Shown one piece after another: positions 1 to 6,966 of a stretch of 6,966 bases of DNA. Each line of letters opens with the position of its first letter. The stretch's first letter is position 1. Below the pieces are notes generated by a model that saw only the letters and a program-made list of their open reading frames with translations, did no database searches and was not told the origin of the DNA. The position numbers and the translations under genes are program-made. The DNA comes from Octopus sinensis. Its lineage: Eukaryota. The DNA lies in assembly GCF_006345805.1 (NCBI RefSeq), contig NW_021829141.1:1-6966 (forward strand), read 5' to 3'.

Positions 1-104
1 CCCTTATATAATGTAATAATTTGAATTCGCCTTGAATGGTCCCTTTGCATACTGAACACTTGGTGAAATTGATTAATAATAATTAATTTTGCCCTCAATT
101 GTTG

Positions 105-108
<4 letters not shown>

Positions 109-168
<60 letters not shown>
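109..168. repeat. Compound microsatellite (TA)15(GA)15
   Basis: Direct reading: TA run 109-138 abutting GA run 139-168. Confidence 0.97.
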
Positions 169-170
<2 letters not shown>

Positions 171-217
171 TATCTCGCTACACACATTAATAACTTACAT
201 ACATGAGTGTACAATGC

Positions 218-275
218 TCACACACACTCACACACACGTACACACGCACGCACGCACACACACACATTTACACAC
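218..275. repeat. Degenerate (CA)n/(CACG)n microsatellite
   Basis: CA-rich run with CG interruptions; explains the His/Thr-rich ORFs 203-406 and 207-395. Confidence 0.85.
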
Positions 276-348
276 AACGAGGTACATACGTATATGTGTA
301 TTATTTTATTCAGTTATTCTATTATTCTCTTGTTTCATTCACCGCACC

Positions 349-371
349 CAGCAGCAGTAGCAGCAGCAGCA
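349..371. repeat. Short (CAG)n microsatellite
   Basis: CAGCAGCAGTAGCAGCAGCAGCA. Confidence 0.85.
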
Positions 372-743
372 TCCAAAGTGTTCCCCTATTTTTAAAGAAA
401 ATATAGTTGGCGAATCAAGGGAGATTTGACTGCTATTTCTCGCAGTCCCAGTGCTCCAACTAAACTTGAATACTCGGATTCACGCTTTTATGAACCTTAT
501 TTAAACCCGAGATCAATTCTGATAAAAATAACTCACGGTCAAATACACTCCAACCGTGACTATCCTCCCTTATATTCCGACAAAGTTTATCTAGGACTAC
601 ATCATTGAATATGTTGTTCATCTTTAAAACGAATATAGGATATGTTTTGAGGAAGATTTGACTATTATTAATACTACGTCAAGTAACAAAGCATATGGGC
701 TCTTGTAAATGTGGTTGTTGTTATTGCGTTTCTCCAAGTTCTT

Positions 744-809
744 GCTGGCCTTATTGTTGTTATTCTTGTTGCTGTCAGGGTACCAAAATTTGAAACTATT
801 ATTATTATA
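744..809 (+). mobile_element. Possible 3' tail remnant of a SINE, interrupted by a short TTG-rich stretch
   Basis: GCTGGCCTT...TACCAAAATTTGAAAC followed by (TAT)n resembles the recalled 3' end of octopus tRNA-SINEs and weakly resembles the tail at 1396-1425 (-). Weak support. Confidence 0.35.
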
Positions 810-816
810 GTCTTTG

Positions 817-930
817 TGAAAGAAAGTCAAAGTCGACCTCAGCGAAATTCGAACTCAGAATATAAACACGGACTATATGTTGTTAAGCATTTTTCCCAGC
901 GTGCTAACGACTCAGCCAGTTCGCCACATT
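817..930 (-). mobile_element. tRNA-derived SINE (family 1), diverged 5' head fragment
   Basis: Homologous to 1480-1540 and 1665-1773 (shared AAAGTCGACCTC.GCG.AATT.GAACTCAGAA). Minus strand has B-box-like GAGTTCGAATTTC (844-856) and A-box-like TGGCTGAGTCG near 909-919. Confidence 0.85.
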
Positions 931-935
931 AGCAG

Positions 936-1298
936 TGTGGTACTCCGTCGGTTACGACGACGAGTGTTCCAACTGATCCGATCAACAGAACAGCTTTGCT
1001 CGTGAAATTAACATGCAAGTGGCTGAGCACTCCACAGACGCGTGTACCCTTAACGTAGTTCTCGGGTAGATTCAGCGTAACACAGTGTGCGACAAGGCTG
1101 GCCCCTTTGAAATACAGGTACTACAGAAACAGGAAGAAAGAGTGAAAGAATACAGCAGGGTTCGCCACCATTTCTTACCGGTGTCTCGTGGAGCTTTTGA
1201 TATTTTCGGTCAATAAACACTCACAACCCCCGGTTTGGGAGTCGAAACCGCGATCCTACGACCGCGAGTTTGCTGCGCTAATCACTGGGTCATGCATT
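936..1298 (-). mobile_element. tRNA-derived SINE (family 2), near full length, about 360 bp
   Basis: Minus-strand head has A-box-like TGACCCAGTGATTAG (1278-1292) and B-box-like GGTTTCGACTCCC (1237-1249) at tRNA spacing, then a non-tRNA body and a 3' stem-loop (946-962). No CCA end or acceptor stem. Body resembles recalled octopus SINE sequence. Confidence 0.8.
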
Positions 1299-1315
1299 AG
1301 CAATAATAACTACAA

Positions 1316-1317
<2 letters not shown>

Positions 1318-1370
<53 letters not shown>

Positions 1371-1395
1371 TAATAATAATAATGATAATAATAAT
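1318..1395. repeat. (AAT)n microsatellite, equal to the (ATT)n 3' tail of the SINE at 1396-1540 (-)
   Basis: About 26 AAT units with GAT variants, directly abutting the SINE 3' end. Confidence 0.95.
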
Positions 1396-1540
1396 CCTTC
1401 CTACTAAAGGCACAAGGGTCCAGTCGGTTAGATCGACCCCAGTACGCTACTGGTACTTAATTTATTGACCCTGAAAGGATGACAGACAAAGTCGACCTCG
1501 GCGGAATTTGAACTCAGAACATAAAGGCAGACGAAATACC
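1396..1540 (-). mobile_element. Family-1 SINE host copy, 3' part (B-box, core, tail)
   Basis: B-box GAGTTCAAATTCC (1503-1515). Core GTCGACTTTG..TCATCCTTTC.GGGTC.AT.AA.TAAGTACCAG is shared with 1541-1773. Its tail differs from that copy and ends in (ATT)n. Confidence 0.88.
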
Positions 1541-1773
1541 TATTTCTTTACTACCCACAAGGGGCTAAACACAGAGGGGACAAACAAGGACAGATAGATG
1601 GATTAAGTCGAATATATCGTCCCCAGTGTGTAACTGGTACTTATTTAATCGACCCCGAAAGAATGAAAGGCAAAGTCGACCTCAGCGGAATTTGAACTCA
1701 GAAGGCAGCGGCGGACGAAATACCACAAAGCATTTCATCCGGCGTGGTAACGTTTCTGCCAGCTCGCCGCCTT
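1541..1773 (-). mobile_element. Full-length family-1 SINE (233 bp) with a Tx1-LINE-like 3' tail, nested in the host SINE
   Basis: A-box-like TGGCAGAAACG (1751-1761), B-box GAGTTCAAATTCC (1687-1699), shared core, and a 3' end ...AGCCCCTTGTGGGTAGTAAAGAAATA matching the LINE end at 4625-4666. Confidence 0.9.
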
Positions 1774-1805
1774 GGCGTTCCAACGATTCTGTCAGCTACG
1801 ACATT
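1774..1805 (-). mobile_element. Family-1 SINE host copy, 5' 32 nt (A-box part)
   Basis: Minus strand AATGTCGTAGCTGACAGAATCGTTGGAACGCC aligns with the first 33 nt of the copies ending at 1773 (AAGGCGGCGAGCTGGCAGAAACGTTACCACGCC) and 930. Confidence 0.75.
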
Positions 1806-1916
1806 GATGTTAATGGTGATGGTCATGATGGTAATCTGTAATCGAACCTAACTTAATCACCAATTAATTAATAATCTTTCTGCCGTATCTTCGATAAATG
1901 ATTCATTCACAAACAC

Positions 1917-1968
1917 TATTTATTTAATTATTTATTTATTTATCTATTTATTTATTTATTTATTTATT
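1917..1968. repeat. (TATT)n microsatellite
   Basis: Direct reading, with a few interruptions. Confidence 0.92.
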
Positions 1969-2139
1969 CTTTTAATGGCTTTAGCCAGAGACGGGCCATG
2001 CTGGGGCACCGCCGTTATGCCGGAGCATATAGTTATGAATTTTATTTCATTTTTGTTTATTTATTTATGTATTTATTTTGAAGTCTTTGTTTTTTTTTTA
2101 TTTATGAATGTATTTATTGCTTGTTCGATGATTTATGTG

Positions 2140-2448
2140 GGGAGAAAGAGGCTGTGTTTGGGGGTGGGCGAGTCGGGTAGGAAGAGGAAGTAATTTGGGT
2201 GTGTGAGGGTCGGGAGAGAGAGAAAGAGAGGGGGAGAGAGGGAGTGCAGAATGATGGATATTTGAGGGTGGGAGAGAATCGGGTATTTTGGGTGTGTGAC
2301 TGGGGCAGGGAGAGGTGGTGTTTTGTTGGAATGAGGATGGAGGGAGGGAAAGAGTAAGAATATATTGAGTTTATCAGGGTGGAGAAGAAGAGGGTATTTG
2401 GTGGTGTGAGCGGAGCAGGGAGACGAGTTGTTTTGCGCGAGCGAGGAT

Positions 2449-2510
<62 letters not shown>

Positions 2511-2830
2511 ACACACACACTCAGAGAAAGAGAACTTATATTTAATATCTAAGGGTATGGAAAGGTATGAGAGCGAGGCACTATTTGGGGTGTGTAGGTG
2601 TGAGGGAAACCGGGTATTTTTGGGTGTGTGTGGTATTTTGTATGTGCTTGAAGATACGGGTGTATTTTCAATATTTGTAAGTGGAAGAGAAGGAATATTA
2701 GAAACTTGCGAAAGTGAGGAAGAGGTTAATTTGGGTATATAAGGGTGGGAGAGAAAGGGGGGAATGTACGGGGCGGAGGGTGGTGTGAATTTGGAGAAGA
2801 GAGTGTAAGCGTGGGTACGTGTGATACGGG
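2140..2830. repeat. G/A-rich, C-poor degenerate tandem/low-complexity region
   Basis: Recurrent (T/A)ATTT(T)GGGTGTGTG-like motif, plus about 60-nt imperfect direct repeats at 2281-2340 and 2392-2450 (period about 111). Confidence 0.6.
2451..2520. repeat. (AC)n microsatellite
   Basis: (AC)29 at 2451-2508, then TT, then (AC)5. Confidence 0.97.
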
Positions 2831-3080
2831 TATATTAGATGGCTTAGTTATTCACTTAATTATAGAGATCTGTGTAGATTACATCAACAGATCCACCGAC
2901 CATTCCTACAAATGGCAGCATGGCGGCCGATATTCGTACATAAAGACATACCGACACATTTAAATACACATAGATATGCACAAACTAGACATTGTAAATG
3001 CCAGAAGGCAAATTTCAGAAACCTATTTTTGACCCTGTAAGTGTGTCTCTCTCTCCTCCTCTTTCTCTCTGTATATATCA

Positions 3081-3106
3081 ATATCTATCTATCTATCTAT
3101 CTATCT
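3081..3106 (+). repeat. (TATC)n tract, left target-site duplication of the LINE
   Basis: ATATCTATCTATCTATCTATCTATCT ends exactly where ORF2 homology (GGT CCG GAC CTC; GPDL) begins. Confidence 0.8.
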
Positions 3107-4272
3107 GGTCCGGACCTCCAAGTGGAGAAGAACTGGAACGAGATAACGAGTAGGGTGGTCACTCTCTCGCCCGGCCAATGGGCCGAGAGGAAACTGTCCC
3201 TAAAAGGTCGAGCGGAGGTGGCGAACACGTACATCGCGTCCGTCATCTACTACCGCCTGACCGTCGTACCTTGTCCCGACCCTACCATCACCAAACTACA
3301 CTACAATCCCTCTTTCGCTTCTTGTGGAAAGGATGCGTCCCGATGGTCAGGCGATCCATTTGCTGTCAACACCCGTTAAAAGGAGGGCTGGGCATGCCGT
3401 GGTTGATGATGCGCAGACACGCGCTGAGACTGCGACATCTCTGGCTCTATGTAGACGACGGTGGACAGGTGTGGTCGCCGTTTGTGAGGCACGCTTTCCC
3501 GCAGCTCGTCTCCATGACCGAACTGCAGTCGTGGATCAAAAAGAGGCCGAGGAAGGCGAATGGCACCGCGAGTGTCGCGTTGCTCTCAAGCAACTCTGCC
3601 GTCCTGGGTCGACCTTAAGTGACTTCAACACAACCAAAGCATTCTATAGGGGTTTAGTGGAGGGGAGGTACGACGACGAGCTCGGGGCGAACCTGGACGT
3701 CGACGAGGAGTACCTGACCCGCCTGTTCGGGACGACTTTCGGGCCAGGGCCCATGGACAACTTCCAGAGATCCCTGGCCTGGCAGTGCTACCGAGAAGCG
3801 CTACCCGTTCGGGATAAGCTCTACAGACACGGCTCGAGAAACACGGGGCGACCTGCCCGAGATGCGGTCAGAGCGACGAAACCGTTCTGCACGCACTCGT
3901 TCAGTGTCCAACAATTTCCGACCTGTGGGCTTATGTCGACAACTGCTGTCACGTTTGGGACGAGTCGGTTTATCAGCCGAGTCTATTGTCAATATTGTCA
4001 CGCCTCCTTCCTTCAAACGAGAAGGAACAGCTATTTTCATCATCCTTGTGGCTATGGCGAAAGAATGTATCTGGTGGACGCGTCTGAAAGGATTGGAGAC
4101 AAACACTTTCCTCTCTGGTCAATCTCTCATCAACTTCTTCAAGTACCACTTGAAAAGGAAAGTGAGAGTAGAGAGGCAAGTTTTGTCTAGCGAATGTTTT
4201 AAAAAAAGATGGGTGAATGTAGCAAGAATGGCACGTATGAATGACGAAGCCACCTTGAGCATAGTCCTATGA
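3107..4272 (+). pseudogene. ORF2 C-terminal part (RT thumb, zf-RVT-like region, CCHC knuckle), four frameshifts, about 385 aa reconstructed
   Basis: Joined frames read NW..I...W..RKLSLKGRAEVAN.YIASVIYYRL, then LFRFLWKG..PMVRRSICCQHPLKGGLGMP, then FQRSLAWQCYREALPVRDKLYRHG, then TCPRCGQSDETVLHALVQC (C-x2-C-x8-H-x4-C at 3854-3907, in a frame absent from the ORF track), then QLLSRL...RWVNVARM..SIVL-stop at 4270-4272. These motifs are characteristic of L1/Tx1 ORF2. Confidence 0.9.
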
Positions 4273-4656
4273 ACCCAGAAATCGAAAACAGAGAGTTGCT
4301 TATTTGCAAAAAAAAAAAAAAAAAAAAAATAATATAAAATGTGACTTCATTGACCGAGGTTACCGTGGTCTTTTCCGCAGGCTTTTCTTTCCACGGGTAA
4401 ACCTCACCTGTCCTCCCCTTTACACTTCATATTGACATTTCTGTGATAACGATCCCTATTGATCATTTTTTTTTTCTCTCCCCCCCCCCTTTTTTTTTTT
4501 TTTTAACCCCCCTTATTTTTGTCTCTTTCTCTCCTTTTACGATCCCTTTTGATCGAACCTCCCCCTTCCTTTTTTTTTTTTTTTTTTTTTTTTAATACCT
4601 TCAAAGAAAAGCTCTACCTGGTAATTTGTTCTATCTGTGTGCAGCCCTGTGTGGCT

Positions 4657-4662
4657 AATAAA
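4657..4662 (+). promoter_or_regulatory. Putative polyadenylation signal AATAAA at the LINE 3' terminus
   Basis: AATAAA 5 nt before the element end; no poly(A) follows, the target repeat does. Confidence 0.5.
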
Positions 4663-4667
4663 GAAAC

Positions 4668-4689
4668 ATATCTATCTATCTATCTATCT
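4668..4689 (+). repeat. (TATC)n tract, right target-site duplication of the LINE
   Basis: ATATCTATCTATCTATCTATCT (22 nt), identical to the start of the left tract, which has one more unit. Confidence 0.8.
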
Positions 4690-4797
4690 AACTACATATA
4701 AATATATATATACAGTGAGAATTAAAAAAAAAAAACCAAGACGGGTGTGTAAACAACAAACAGATGTATTACTTCAGCGCTCGGGAAGTGAGAAAGT

Positions 4798-4833
4798 CTT
4801 TTACGTTTCGAGCCTACGCTCTTCGACAGAGAG
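4798..4833 (-). ncRNA. Minimal type-I hammerhead ribozyme-like motif (variant core)
   Basis: Minus strand CUCU-CUGUCGA-A-GAGC(GUAG)GCUC-GAAA-C-GUA-AAAG: perfect 4-bp stem II, GAAA, loop-less palindromic stem III (ACGU), NUH = GUA, stem I 3/4 paired. Core deviates from CUGANGA at A6. Confidence 0.55.
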
Positions 4834-5105
4834 GAACACAGAAATAAACAGGGAAAGAAAATAGAAAAAGGTTTAATGGCTAGTGATCTATCATGGCAAA
4901 TGCTGGACAGATGGGTGACACAGGAGAGCTAGGAAGAAGGGGAGATAATAAAGTAGTGGTGATCCCAAAACTAAGGTGCGTGAGCGTTTGTATGAGAGGG
5001 TGGAAGGGAGAAGGTGGGTAGGAGTGAAGAGACGAAGTAGGTGCCAGAACAAGATAGGAGTGGTGGGTGGGAGGAAGTAGGTGTGTGAGGGAGAGAGGAA
5101 GAGGG

Positions 5106-5301
5106 TTAGATGAATAGGGGAGGAGAGTTGAGCCCATATGGCGCAAAAGAGTGAAAAGATTAATCCCTGTTCGCGGCGAAGACGGGAGTCCGGATGGCCC
5201 CCGTGCAAGGACAGTCCGAACACAGACAGGTGTTGTAAAGAGTGACCGGTAGAGCAGAAATGGAGCGAGACTGGAGTGTCATTGCCAAGTCGGATTAATC
5301 T
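5106..5301 (-). pseudogene. C-terminal fragment of a Penelope-type GIY-YIG endonuclease
   Basis: Manual translation RLIRLGNDTPVSLHFCSTGHSLQHLSVFGLSLHGGHPDSRLRREQGLIFSL, frameshift near 5148, then FAPYGLNSPPLFI-stop. Fits the PLE pattern IR..D.PV..HF...GHS...L.V.GL....R...EQ.LIF.L....P.GLN. Confidence 0.78.
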
Positions 5302-5937
5302 AGGTTGTGTTGTGCATGTAATAGATATTGTTTCATTGTATGATCAATTGGCCCATTGTATGTGAATGGTTCTAGAAGATGTCATTAATGTCTGTCGGAG
5401 AAATTATGGCTTTTTATTTAAGCTGTTATACTTTGGAATCTCGATAAAAAAAAAACGGAATCAATCAATTTTTACAGACACCTCCATCGACCTCGTTATT
5501 CATTGTAGACTTTACCTCTACCAATCAGTTACCGGTTCTTAGCGGAATGTTTTTCATATGCAGAGATGTGGTACCATTAATTTATTCATCACCAAATTAC
5601 ACTTCCACTGCTCACTTCTGTTTTTAAGCATTGCACTGAAGAGATAAAACCATCATTTATTTTTTGCACGTGATAAGATGGCAATATCACGTGTTTTCAC
5701 GTACAGTAAAGATTGGATAGATTTGACGTTCATTTTCTAATGGTTCGTATGAAGATTTTTCAATGCATTTTTGACTGAACTCATTTCGATATATTTGATA
5801 ATATTTTTGTCTCTCTATATATTGTCAAGTTGCTCTTTTACTCCAGTCGTTTGAACAATCGAAAACGTTAAACTTGGAATTTCAGTTTAAAAACCTACAG
5901 CTTATAAAATATATGTTCTCTTCTTTATGGATTGAGT

Positions 5938-6017
5938 ATTCTATTGACTGCAAACAAAAGCGTATTCTATCGTCTGTAAACACAAATGGATTCTATCGTC
6001 TGCAAAATTACAAGCGT
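5938..6017. repeat. Three imperfect 26-bp tandem units (ATTCTATCGTCTG core)
   Basis: Units start at 5938, 5964 and 5990. Confidence 0.8.
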
Positions 6018-6029
6018 CCACCAGTGTCT

Positions 6030-6519
6030 ACACATACGTATATATACATGCACGTGCCATCTTACATACATTACTTAAGCACATACACACCTATATCTAG
6101 ACCTACAAATATACGCATGCAAACTAATTCACATAAATAAGGACACTGAGGCGCTCACATGCACACACTCGCATACACACACACACACACACATACACAC
6201 ACACGCACATGCACGCATTTACACACACACACACATTCTCTCTCTTTTACTCTCTCTCATACACACATATACGTCCATATAAACTGAAAGAGTGATACGC
6301 TCAAACATATCTACAAACATACATACACACATACACACGCACACATACGTATACACAGACACACACATACCGACATATGCACACACCTACACATGTACAC
6401 ACTCACACACCGACCTATATGCATAACCCTATGAACATACATAAACACATACATACGCACACACACACACACAGACACACACACATATATATATAACCAC
6501 ACACACGCATGAATATATT

Positions 6520-6551
<32 letters not shown>

Positions 6552-6637
6552 AACATGCATTTAGGAATACAAGAGATACATGCACTGACATACTCGCCAC
6601 ATACACATGCTTTCATAGACACACACACACACACACA
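6030..6637. repeat. Long degenerate (CA)n/(CATA)n field
   Basis: Interrupted CA/CATA/CACG runs; explains the Cys/Val-rich minus-strand ORFs. Confidence 0.9.
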
Positions 6638-6642
6638 TGAAG

Positions 6643-6721
<79 letters not shown>

Positions 6722-6752
6722 GTCATCGTCGTCGTCGTCGTCGTCATTATTA

Positions 6753-6800
<48 letters not shown>
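6643..6800. repeat. Compound trinucleotide microsatellite (CAT)26-CGT-CAT-(CGT)6-(ATT)n
   Basis: Direct reading; gives the poly-Ser/poly-Tyr ORF 6555-6851. Confidence 0.97.
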
Positions 6801-6802
<2 letters not shown>

Positions 6803-6966
6803 CTCCTTCTTAGTCAAATCGATCAAGGGCGAATTCATTAAGGCACATTGAGGGCTACCCCTCAGGCTTAATAGCTGATGGGTGGATAGGTGGGTGGGGA
6901 ATGGCGATGGTGCTGGTGGTAGGTTAAGGTCGGGGTAGGGCTTGTTGGTCGGTCGGTCAGTGGGTG

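Follow-up and report, generated by a model that had tools for sequence, protein, structure and literature searches.

A 3' tail common to an octopus SINE and an L1-superfamily, probably Tx1-type, LINE suggests a candidate SINE-LINE partnership in octopods

The stretch of DNA analysed here, referred to as the window, is a repeat-rich piece of 6966 nucleotides from Octopus sinensis (contig NW_021829141.1, positions 1 to 6,966 of the forward strand). Two of its repeats are the subject of this report, namely a short interspersed element on the minus strand, designated SINE A, and a 5'-truncated long interspersed element (LINE) on the plus strand, the 3' ends of which resemble each other. SINE A is one of three related SINE copies in the window, and adjoins an older copy referred to as the host SINE. 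The features of SINE A and of the LINE, including its open reading frame 2 (ORF2) and 3' untranslated region (3'UTR), are as follows:

1541..1773, minus strand: SINE A, about 233 nt, in which a head with the box-B-like motif GAGTTCAAATTCC is followed by a conserved core (..GCCTTTCATTCTTTCGGGGTCGATTAAATAAGTACCAG..) and then by a LINE-like tail; its 5' limit is placed only approximately.
1543..1612, minus strand: tail of SINE A, putatively of LINE origin and about 60-70 nt long, containing the 42-nt match at 1543-1584.
1553..1565, minus strand: small hairpin GCCC-CUUGU-GGGU in the tail of SINE A, predicted by RNAfold.
3082..3106, no strand: (TATC)n at the 5' junction of the LINE, one copy of the flanking repeat, which reflects either a long target-site duplication or insertion into a microsatellite.
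3107..4272, plus strand: C-terminal part of the LINE ORF2, 5'-truncated and frameshifted, including the zf-RVT CCHC domain (three-frame translation; Pfam zf-RVT, 8e-09).
4273..4667, plus strand: LINE 3'UTR, colinear with the UTR that follows the ORF2 stop codon of an independent copy, L029.
4611..4667, plus strand: conserved terminal module of the LINE, containing the match at 4625-4666.
4643..4656, plus strand: hairpin AGCC-CUGUGU-GGCU in the LINE tail, predicted by RNAfold.
4668..4692, no strand: CATATCTATCTATCTATCTATCTA at the 3' junction of the LINE, the second copy of the flanking repeat.

The tail of SINE A (reverse complement of 1543-1584, TTTGTCCCCTCTGTGTTTAGCCCCTTGTGGGTAGTAAAGAAA) can be aligned without gaps to the 3' end of the LINE (4625-4666, plus strand, TTTGTTCTATCTGTGTGCAGCCCTGTGTGGCTAATAAAGAAA) with 33 identities in 42 positions, exactly as described in a first-pass annotation that was made from the letters of the window and proposed a SINE-LINE partnership. 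The runner-up 42-mer in the whole window, on either strand, reaches 22-23 identities. In 500 dinucleotide-preserving shuffles, the best score had a mean of 22.6 (standard deviation 1.0) and a maximum of 27, and none reached 33 (z of about 10). When gaps are permitted, the last 60 nucleotides of SINE A and the window LINE share 42 matches over 57 aligned positions. The additional upstream match that had been noted (TCTATCTG/TCTACCTG) is present, but only if a 2-nt indel is introduced. As was also proposed, both sequences lie at the termini of their elements. The last position of the LINE is 4666/4667, and the adjoining ATATCTATCTATCTATCTATCTA repeats the (TATC)n of the 5' junction at 3082-3106 and so brackets the element. 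SINE A ends at 1541-1543, where it abuts the sequence GGTATTTCG of the older SINE. Judged by these comparisons, the 3' terminus of the SINE is evidently homologous to that of the LINE, above the level expected by chance.

The match is not a peculiarity of the two copies in the window. Five LINE 3' ends, which come from Octopus-like contigs and from Argonauta hians (that of the window and those of the copies designated L002, L031, L001a and L001b), keep the module TCTGTGT..GGCC-CTTGT-GGCY-TAATAAAGAAAT. The window LINE terminates in ..TCTATCTGTGTGCAGCCCTGTGTGGCTAATAAAGAAA, L002 in ..TTTCCGGGCCCTTGTGGCCAATAAAAGAAATC(ATT)n, L031 from Argonauta in ..GTCCCCTCTATGTTTTTGCCCTTGTGGCTAATAAAAGAAATA(ATT)4, L001b, also from Argonauta, in ..ATTCTGTGTCGGCCCTTGTGGCTAATAAAGAAATCTAT, and L001a in ..TTCTGTGTCAGCCAGGTGGCTAAGAAAGAAAT. 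Among these five copies (10 pairs), mean identity is 80% over the last 35 nucleotides and 77% over the last 45, and drops to 53% over the remaining 3'UTR; a tail that is more conserved than the remaining UTR is the pattern by which stringent LINEs are recognised (PMC3472496). The terminal ..AAAGAAAT is common to all LINE and SINE copies, with TCTAT, (ATT)n or a similar sequence after it, and none of the copies compared has the poly(A) end of a relaxed, mammalian-type L1. Loss of the match at the family level, which would have spoken against the proposal, is not what is found, with the module being kept across LINE subfamilies and two octopod genera. In addition, the tail of SINE A is closer to that of L031 (36/43 in the last 45 nucleotides) than to that of the window LINE (34/45), in line with the earlier expectation that the real partner is probably a sister family. 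Over the last 60 nucleotides, SINE A has 42-45 matches with four of the five LINE tails, and 38 with L001a. Of the remaining copies, L030 and L032 stop short of the LINE terminus, and L033 retains CTCTTGTGGCCAAT and then diverges. A scan of viral and metagenome contig collections with the tail pattern CCYTTGTGGNTANTAAAGAAA gave 25 matches, all of them chance matches in unrelated contexts. The locus L001 also holds, at 8420-8648, a UTR-only Argonauta LINE copy of 229 nt that lies 140 nt downstream of the near-full-length copy, showing that 5' truncation in the family can be extreme.

A relaxed motif search of the two Argonauta loci L001 and L031, which together comprise 35 kb, identified 17 module termini ending in ..TTCTGTGTTCGGCCCTTGTGGCTAATAGAGAAATCTAT. 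LINEs account for three of these, and the other 14 are the ends of non-coding short elements, several of which combine a head bearing the box-B-like motif GTGTTCGAATCCC with a core as in the window SINE (..GCCTTTC.TTTC.GGATCGATAAAACAAGTACCAG..GGGGTCGATGGTATCGAC..). One of them, SINE_Arg3, is nearly identical to the LINE copy LINE_L001b, with 38/40 matches in the last 45 nucleotides and 50/53 in the last 60. In two others, Arg4 and Arg5, the tail is of the same long form as in the window SINE (TCCATYTATCTGYCCTTGTTTGWC...), and the tail of the window SINE would thus represent an old, common module, and not a one-off. Three Argonauta copies are flanked by target-site duplications, which give element lengths of about 140-260 nt. 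The elements can be regarded as SINEs in that they are short, non-coding and multicopy, with target-site duplications on these three. A stop-free antisense translation of the SINE had no match in the protein collection. Matches of the Rfam models mir-297, CrcZ and isrI were rejected as microsatellite artefacts.

A hairpin of 3-4 bp is predicted by RNAfold in 17 of 19 tails. The predicted stems are AGCC-CUGUGU-GGCU in the window LINE, GGCC-CUUGU-GGCC in L002, AGCC-AGGU-GGCU in L001a, GGCC-CUUGU-GGCU in most Argonauta copies, and GCCC-CUUGU-GGGU in the window SINE; they are given here sequence by sequence because a MAFFT alignment puts the variants with 6-nt and 4-nt loops out of register. The second pair of the stem is C:G in the window SINE and G:C in the LINEs, both sides having changed. 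Related arrangements are found at greater distances. In the cuttlefish locus L034, with a protein (P0125) that over half its length has 51% identity to the Argonauta ORF2, UGGC-CUUGU-GCCG lies downstream of ORF2; the octopod-type AAAGAAA terminus is absent from this locus, leaving the hairpin only. In L035/L036, from a eukaryote with an ORF2 that is 43% identical, AGGC-CUUGU-GCCU is found downstream of ORF2 exactly once per element. In both cases the third stem pair is flipped, a compensatory change, and the CUUGU loop is unchanged. On these structure predictions, the pattern suggests that the hairpin may be a conserved recognition element. The L035/L036 LINE (ENA ERZ21867824, contig ctg88761c) encodes an ORF1 of about 719 aa and an ORF2 of 1155 aa, and forms a head-to-tail tandem array that repeats every 6821 bp; between the copies, Rfam found no RNA-gene target.

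The class of the tail-bearing LINE is best seen in L001, a near-full-length copy. It has an ORF1 of 476 aa with the CCHC knuckle CFICQKPGHLKSVC, and an ORF2 that is split by one frameshift into a part with an apurinic endonuclease (APE) domain and a part with the reverse transcriptase (RT) and zf-RVT domains (Pfam: Exo_endo_phos, 4e-12; RVT_1, 1.9e-31; zf-RVT, 4.3e-06). The Pfam zf-CCHC score of ORF1 is 17.7 bits, under the cut-off of 20.8, and neither Transposase_22 nor RRM was found in it by Pfam. Among solved structures in PDB, the best match of the RT is human L1 ORF2p (about 3e-51), with R2 proteins at 1e-26 or weaker. Because of the knuckle in ORF1, the combination of APE, RT and zf-RVT in ORF2, and the match to human L1 ORF2p, the tail-bearing LINE is placed by its domain architecture in the L1 superfamily. 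Within it, the LINE is probably of Tx1 type, an assignment drawn from ORF1 and the literature and not from an RT tree. For instance, the LINE superfamilies reported for Octopus vulgaris are RTE, Dong-R4, CR1, L1-Tx1, Hero and R2 (PMC13282606), trees of mollusc LINE RTs recover Tx1 (PMC10294476), and RRM/zf-CCHC ORF1 proteins of non-mammalian animals have been described as consistent with Tx1 (PMC5203782). The first-pass description of a Tx1-like LINE is thus upheld as to the superfamily, with the Tx1 part being only likely and taken from the literature. A Dong/R4 partner would have a restriction-like endonuclease, and an RTE partner a single ORF with APE and RT but no C-terminal CCHC; the tail-bearing LINE is of neither type, having an ORF1 together with APE, RT and zf-RVT.

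Homologues of the window ORF2 protein are 59-78% identical and include annotated Argonauta hians proteins, and a stretch of 36 residues is 97% identical to an Octopus bimaculoides protein. Of 120 matches listed, seven bear a name, and none of these names points to a LINE clade. Cephalopod-type ORF2 fragments (P0006, P0001, P0002, P0004) are also found under bacterial or metagenome labels, such as 'MAG: zinc-binding domain-containing protein [Herbaspirillum sp.]', and most likely represent contamination of assemblies with host DNA.

Our reading of these data is that the terminal 45-70 nt of SINE A are a module that stems from the 3' end of an L1-superfamily, probably Tx1-type, LINE, and that such SINEs are copied in trans by insertion at TATTT-like sites; we put its probability at about 80%. 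The module consists, in order, of a TCTGTGT-like stretch, the predicted 3-4-bp hairpin with a CUUGU-type loop, UAAUAAAGAAAU, and a short, variable end that is A/T-rich or a microsatellite, for instance (AUU)n or UCUA. We infer that the ORF2 protein of the LINE would recognise this 3' module in a stringent manner and start target-primed reverse transcription there, and that SINE transcripts with the same module would be copied in trans. Insertion would occur at many sites, and the TATTT-like start of the duplications suggests that the nicked target and the 3' end of the RNA share short microhomology. Going by the common tail, these abundant SINEs very probably owe their copying to the LINE family. 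The partnership, with a tail of LINE origin, is thus well supported as a candidate at the level of the family.

Several points weigh against this reading. The nearly identical SINE/LINE pair comes from Argonauta and not from the species of the window, for which one long-tailed SINE copy and one LINE copy were available in its own genome, 76-79% identical to each other. L002, L029, L032 and L033 are short contigs from metagenome assemblies. The predicted stem is only 3-4 bp long and is broken in several SINE copies, and the assignment to the Tx1 clade is indirect. No tRNA match was found in the SINE heads of the window, L001 or L031 by ARAGORN or Rfam, and the origin of the SINEs from a tRNA or other RNA polymerase III (pol III) gene therefore rests on the box-B-like motifs visible in the heads (GAGTTCAAATTCC in the window, GTGTTCGAATCCC in Argonauta) and on the class given in the literature. 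Finally, the sequences are compatible with transfer in either direction, from LINE to SINE or from SINE to LINE.

The relationship between SINE A and the SINE next to it bears on how the tail was obtained. The features of the host SINE are the following:

1302..1395, minus strand: terminal repeat (ATT)n of the host SINE (Tandem Repeats Finder (TRF): period 3, 31 copies).
1396..1540, minus strand: 3' part of the older host SINE, comprising the core and the short tail GGACCCTTGTGCCTTTAGTAGGAAGG, and beginning at GGTATTTCG.
1774..1802, minus strand: 5' part of the host SINE head (..TCGTAGCTGACAGAATCGTTGGAACGCC), cut off by the insertion of SINE A, as seen when the joined flanks are aligned to SINE A.

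SINE A and the host SINE are 81.5% identical over 119 nt of the core. When the host flanks are joined, they rebuild one SINE that is minus 16 nt (GGATGAAATGCTTTGT) at the junction, indicating that SINE A is nested in the head of the host SINE, with a 16-bp target deletion and no duplication. A single chimeric insertion of both by template switching was considered and rejected in favour of nesting, because part of the host head is found upstream of SINE A and a single SINE, short of 16 nt, results when the flanks are joined.

In the host SINE some 35-40 nt of the longer tail are missing and the terminus is (ATT)31, a difference that the first-pass annotation had taken to be a tail swap. Such a history, in which a lineage of SINEs whose (ATT)n tail was unrelated had been moved by a Dong/R4 or RTE-like LINE and later captured the L1/Tx1-type tail, would agree with the fact that SINE A and the host align through head and core and then diverge, SINE A having about 35-40 additional LINE-like nucleotides. 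Exchange of tails among SINEs is also known (PMC5786205, PMC4824008), and (TAA)n-targeting Dong-R4 elements occur in abundance in octopus (PMC13282606). The host tail is not unrelated in sequence, however. Just before the repeat it reads GGACCCTTGTGCCTTTAGTAGGAAGG, which includes CCCTTGTG (one half of the hairpin and the loop) and TAGTA..GAA, in the same order as in the LINE and in SINE A, and its GGACCCTTGTGCC and TAGTAGGAAGG are retained with a spacing to the terminal repeat as in the LINE. The similarity spans 10-11 nt and is of modest significance, being reached by 13-53 of 2000 shuffles against four of the five tails and by 431 of 2000 against the window LINE. Nor does the (ATT)n end signal another partner, since the LINE copies L002 and L031 of the same family also end in (ATT)n. 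A true swap is thus unlikely, and two variants of one putatively LINE-derived tail would be the simpler reading.

Two further SINE-like sequences lie nearby. A third, partial copy akin to SINE A and the host SINE is found at 818-933 on the minus strand (73% over 116 nt, including head and box B), and ends early in TATAATAATAATAG. A different SINE-like element occupies 935-1290 on the minus strand, with the head GCATGACCCAGTGATTAGCGCAGC..GGTTTCGACTCCC and the 3' part ..TTAATTTCACGAGCAAAGCTGTTCTGTTGATCGGATCAGTTGGAACACTCGTCGTCGTAACCGACGGAGTACCAC. This element is without the L1/Tx1-type tail, and at least two types of SINE tail therefore coexist in the window.

It had also been proposed that with the tail the SINE captured a Tx1-type target specificity, with integration directed to GGTATTTCG in SINE heads. 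SINE A does lie exactly before GGTATTTCG in the head of another SINE, target specificity is shown by many LINEs of the Tx1 clade (PMC4494074), a (TATC)n microsatellite surrounds the LINE of the window, and L002 borders on (ATT)n. Against such specificity, the three Argonauta target-site duplications (CTATTTCAAGGAA, ATTTGTCAAAC and TTATTTGCTAGCTGG) are at unrelated loci and have in common only a TATTT-like start, and the 3' flanks of the 17 Argonauta copies differ past a short T/A-rich start, most of them being TCTAT(T) followed by unrelated A/T-rich sequence. In addition, GGTATTTCG is a single instance at which SINE A replaced 16 bp of the host without a duplication, and it contains TATTT itself; (ATT)n and (TATC)n give partial matches. 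Sequence-specific integration of this kind is improbable, and the proposal is not borne out. In this small sample, the insertion sites fit a short preference, or microhomology, for TATTT-like sequences, and would not fit one long target in the style of Tx1.

A more basic alternative holds that the LINE stops at the A22 run at 4308-4329, with the rest being a separate, tail-bearing non-autonomous element, and the comparison with SINE A would then be one of SINE with SINE. The run lies 36 nt past the ORF2 stop codon, long T runs break up the region that follows, and L1-type elements usually end in poly(A). However, in L029, an independent contig with an ORF that is 78% identical to the window ORF2, the ORF2 stop passes directly into a UTR that is colinear with window positions of about 4348-4640 and is without the A run, the common stretches being ATTGACYGAGGTTAMCCGTGGTCTTTT..TTTCTTTCCACGG.TAAACCTC, GATCCCTTTTGAT and AAAGAAAA.CTCT.C. 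Likewise, L002, L031 and L001a have an ORF2 stop, then a UTR of about 220-270 nt, and then the same terminal module, and in the window the (TATC)n flanks enclose 3107-4667 as one insertion. An origin of 4330-4667 outside the LINE, which the first-pass annotation had named as fatal to its proposal, is thus highly improbable, and the alignment with L029 indicates that this sequence belongs to the LINE as its 3'UTR. The A22 run is complementary to T-rich runs at 4570-4593 and 4478-4504; these are absent from L029 and are private expansions of the window copy. Last, a chance or low-complexity likeness, by which two T/G-rich 42-mers ending in AAAGAAA would be uninformative, has practically nothing left to it, for although the composition of both regions is biased and the window is rich in microsatellites, no shuffle exceeded 27/42, and independent LINE copies, as well as 14 SINE-like elements of another genus, have the motif at their ends.

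The window contains other repeats. G-rich degenerate repeat units (GGGTATTTGGGTGTGTGAGGGTGGGAGAGA...) at 2140-2830 and 4880-5110 flank (CA)35; they resemble a decayed minisatellite or an unclassified repeat, and are absent from the TRF output. A compound microsatellite at 6643-6800 consists of (CAT)28, then (CGT)n, then (ATT)19, and (ATT)n tracts hence also occur independently of SINE tails.

The borrowing of LINE tails by SINEs is a textbook phenomenon, and the unusual point here is the clade of the LINE partner and not the sharing of a tail. Of the O. vulgaris genome, about 11.6% is SINE sequence (PMC13282606), and SINEs have undergone an octopus-specific expansion (PMC8967140). Attention has been drawn to an RTE element expressed in octopus brain (PMC9115989), and in the papers searched on octopus repeats, abundant SINEs and L1-Tx1 LINEs are described with the partners of the SINEs unnamed (PMC8967140, PMC13282606, PMC9115989). 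The conserved common tail points to an L1/Tx1-type LINE as the partner, and provides a concrete pair to test, one that may already be recorded in Repbase or Dfam. The interest would be greater should this LINE turn out to drive SINE expansion in octopus and the recognition element to be the CUUGU hairpin. A tentative extension, for which we would give slightly less than even odds, is that an animal lineage of the L1/Tx1 superfamily has stringent recognition of a 3' hairpin (CUUGU loop, 4-bp stem), kept with compensatory changes at about 43-51% ORF2 identity, in cuttlefish and in a non-octopod eukaryote, and that in octopods this lineage, not RTE, is the engine of a SINE expansion filling more than 10% of genomes.

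Ohshima and Okada reportedly described the octopus SINEs OK, OR1 and OR2 in 1994. The known octopus SINEs and the window SINE agree in being short interspersed repeats that abound in octopods and have a conserved core and a head that is, in the window SINE, putatively of pol III type; the core of the window SINE (..GGGGTCGATAAATTAAGTACCAG..) may resemble the Deu domain. By RepeatMasker, octopus SINEs are classed as tRNA-Deu or tRNA-Core (PMC8967140).

Pairs of SINEs and LINEs with a common 3' tail and stringent recognition were reportedly brought to light by Ohshima, Okada and co-workers, and include UnaSINE1 and UnaL2 of the eel. Pairs of this type and the octopod pair are alike in terminal 3' homology, in a tail that is more conserved than the UTR, in a small stem-loop, predicted in the octopod tails, before a short, repeat-like end, and in having several SINE families per tail. 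However, most partners in stringent pairs are L2, CR1 or RTE elements, whereas the octopod candidate partner has the architecture of the L1 superfamily. Sharing of the 3' tail and recognition of the 3' end in a stringent manner are well established (PMC3472496, PMC3747384, PMC4824008), and in a survey of 58 SINE/LINE pairs three had L1-clade tails, all of them in plants or algae (PMC3472496).

Those three are the closest counterparts by clade, namely ZmSINE2 and ZmSINE3 of maize and sorghum with LINE1-1_ZM, and SINEX-3_CR of Chlamydomonas with L1-1_CR (PMC3472496). As in the octopod pair, an L1-superfamily LINE has in common with SINEs a conserved 3' end of about 45-80 nt with a hairpin, predicted in the octopod pair, and the last 45 or so nucleotides are conserved relative to the whole element. 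The plant and algal pairs have poly(A) ends, whereas the octopod pair, from an animal and probably of the Tx1 branch, has AAAGAAAT followed by a short A/T-rich or microsatellite end. The octopod pair would add an animal case to the few L1-superfamily LINEs with 3' ends shared by SINEs, and bears on whether stringent recognition is ancestral in the L1 group.

In animals, the nearest parallel is SINEU of crocodilians, which, like the octopod SINEs, has been proposed to depend on the machinery of a Tx1-type LINE, in that case Tx1-Mar (PMC4494074). SINEU elements have heads derived from small nuclear RNA and poly(A) tails, and the partnership was inferred from a specific target, Mariner-N4_AMi, and from common 5' heads (PMC4494074). 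In the octopod pair, by contrast, the evidence for the partnership is the common 3' tail, without a specific target.

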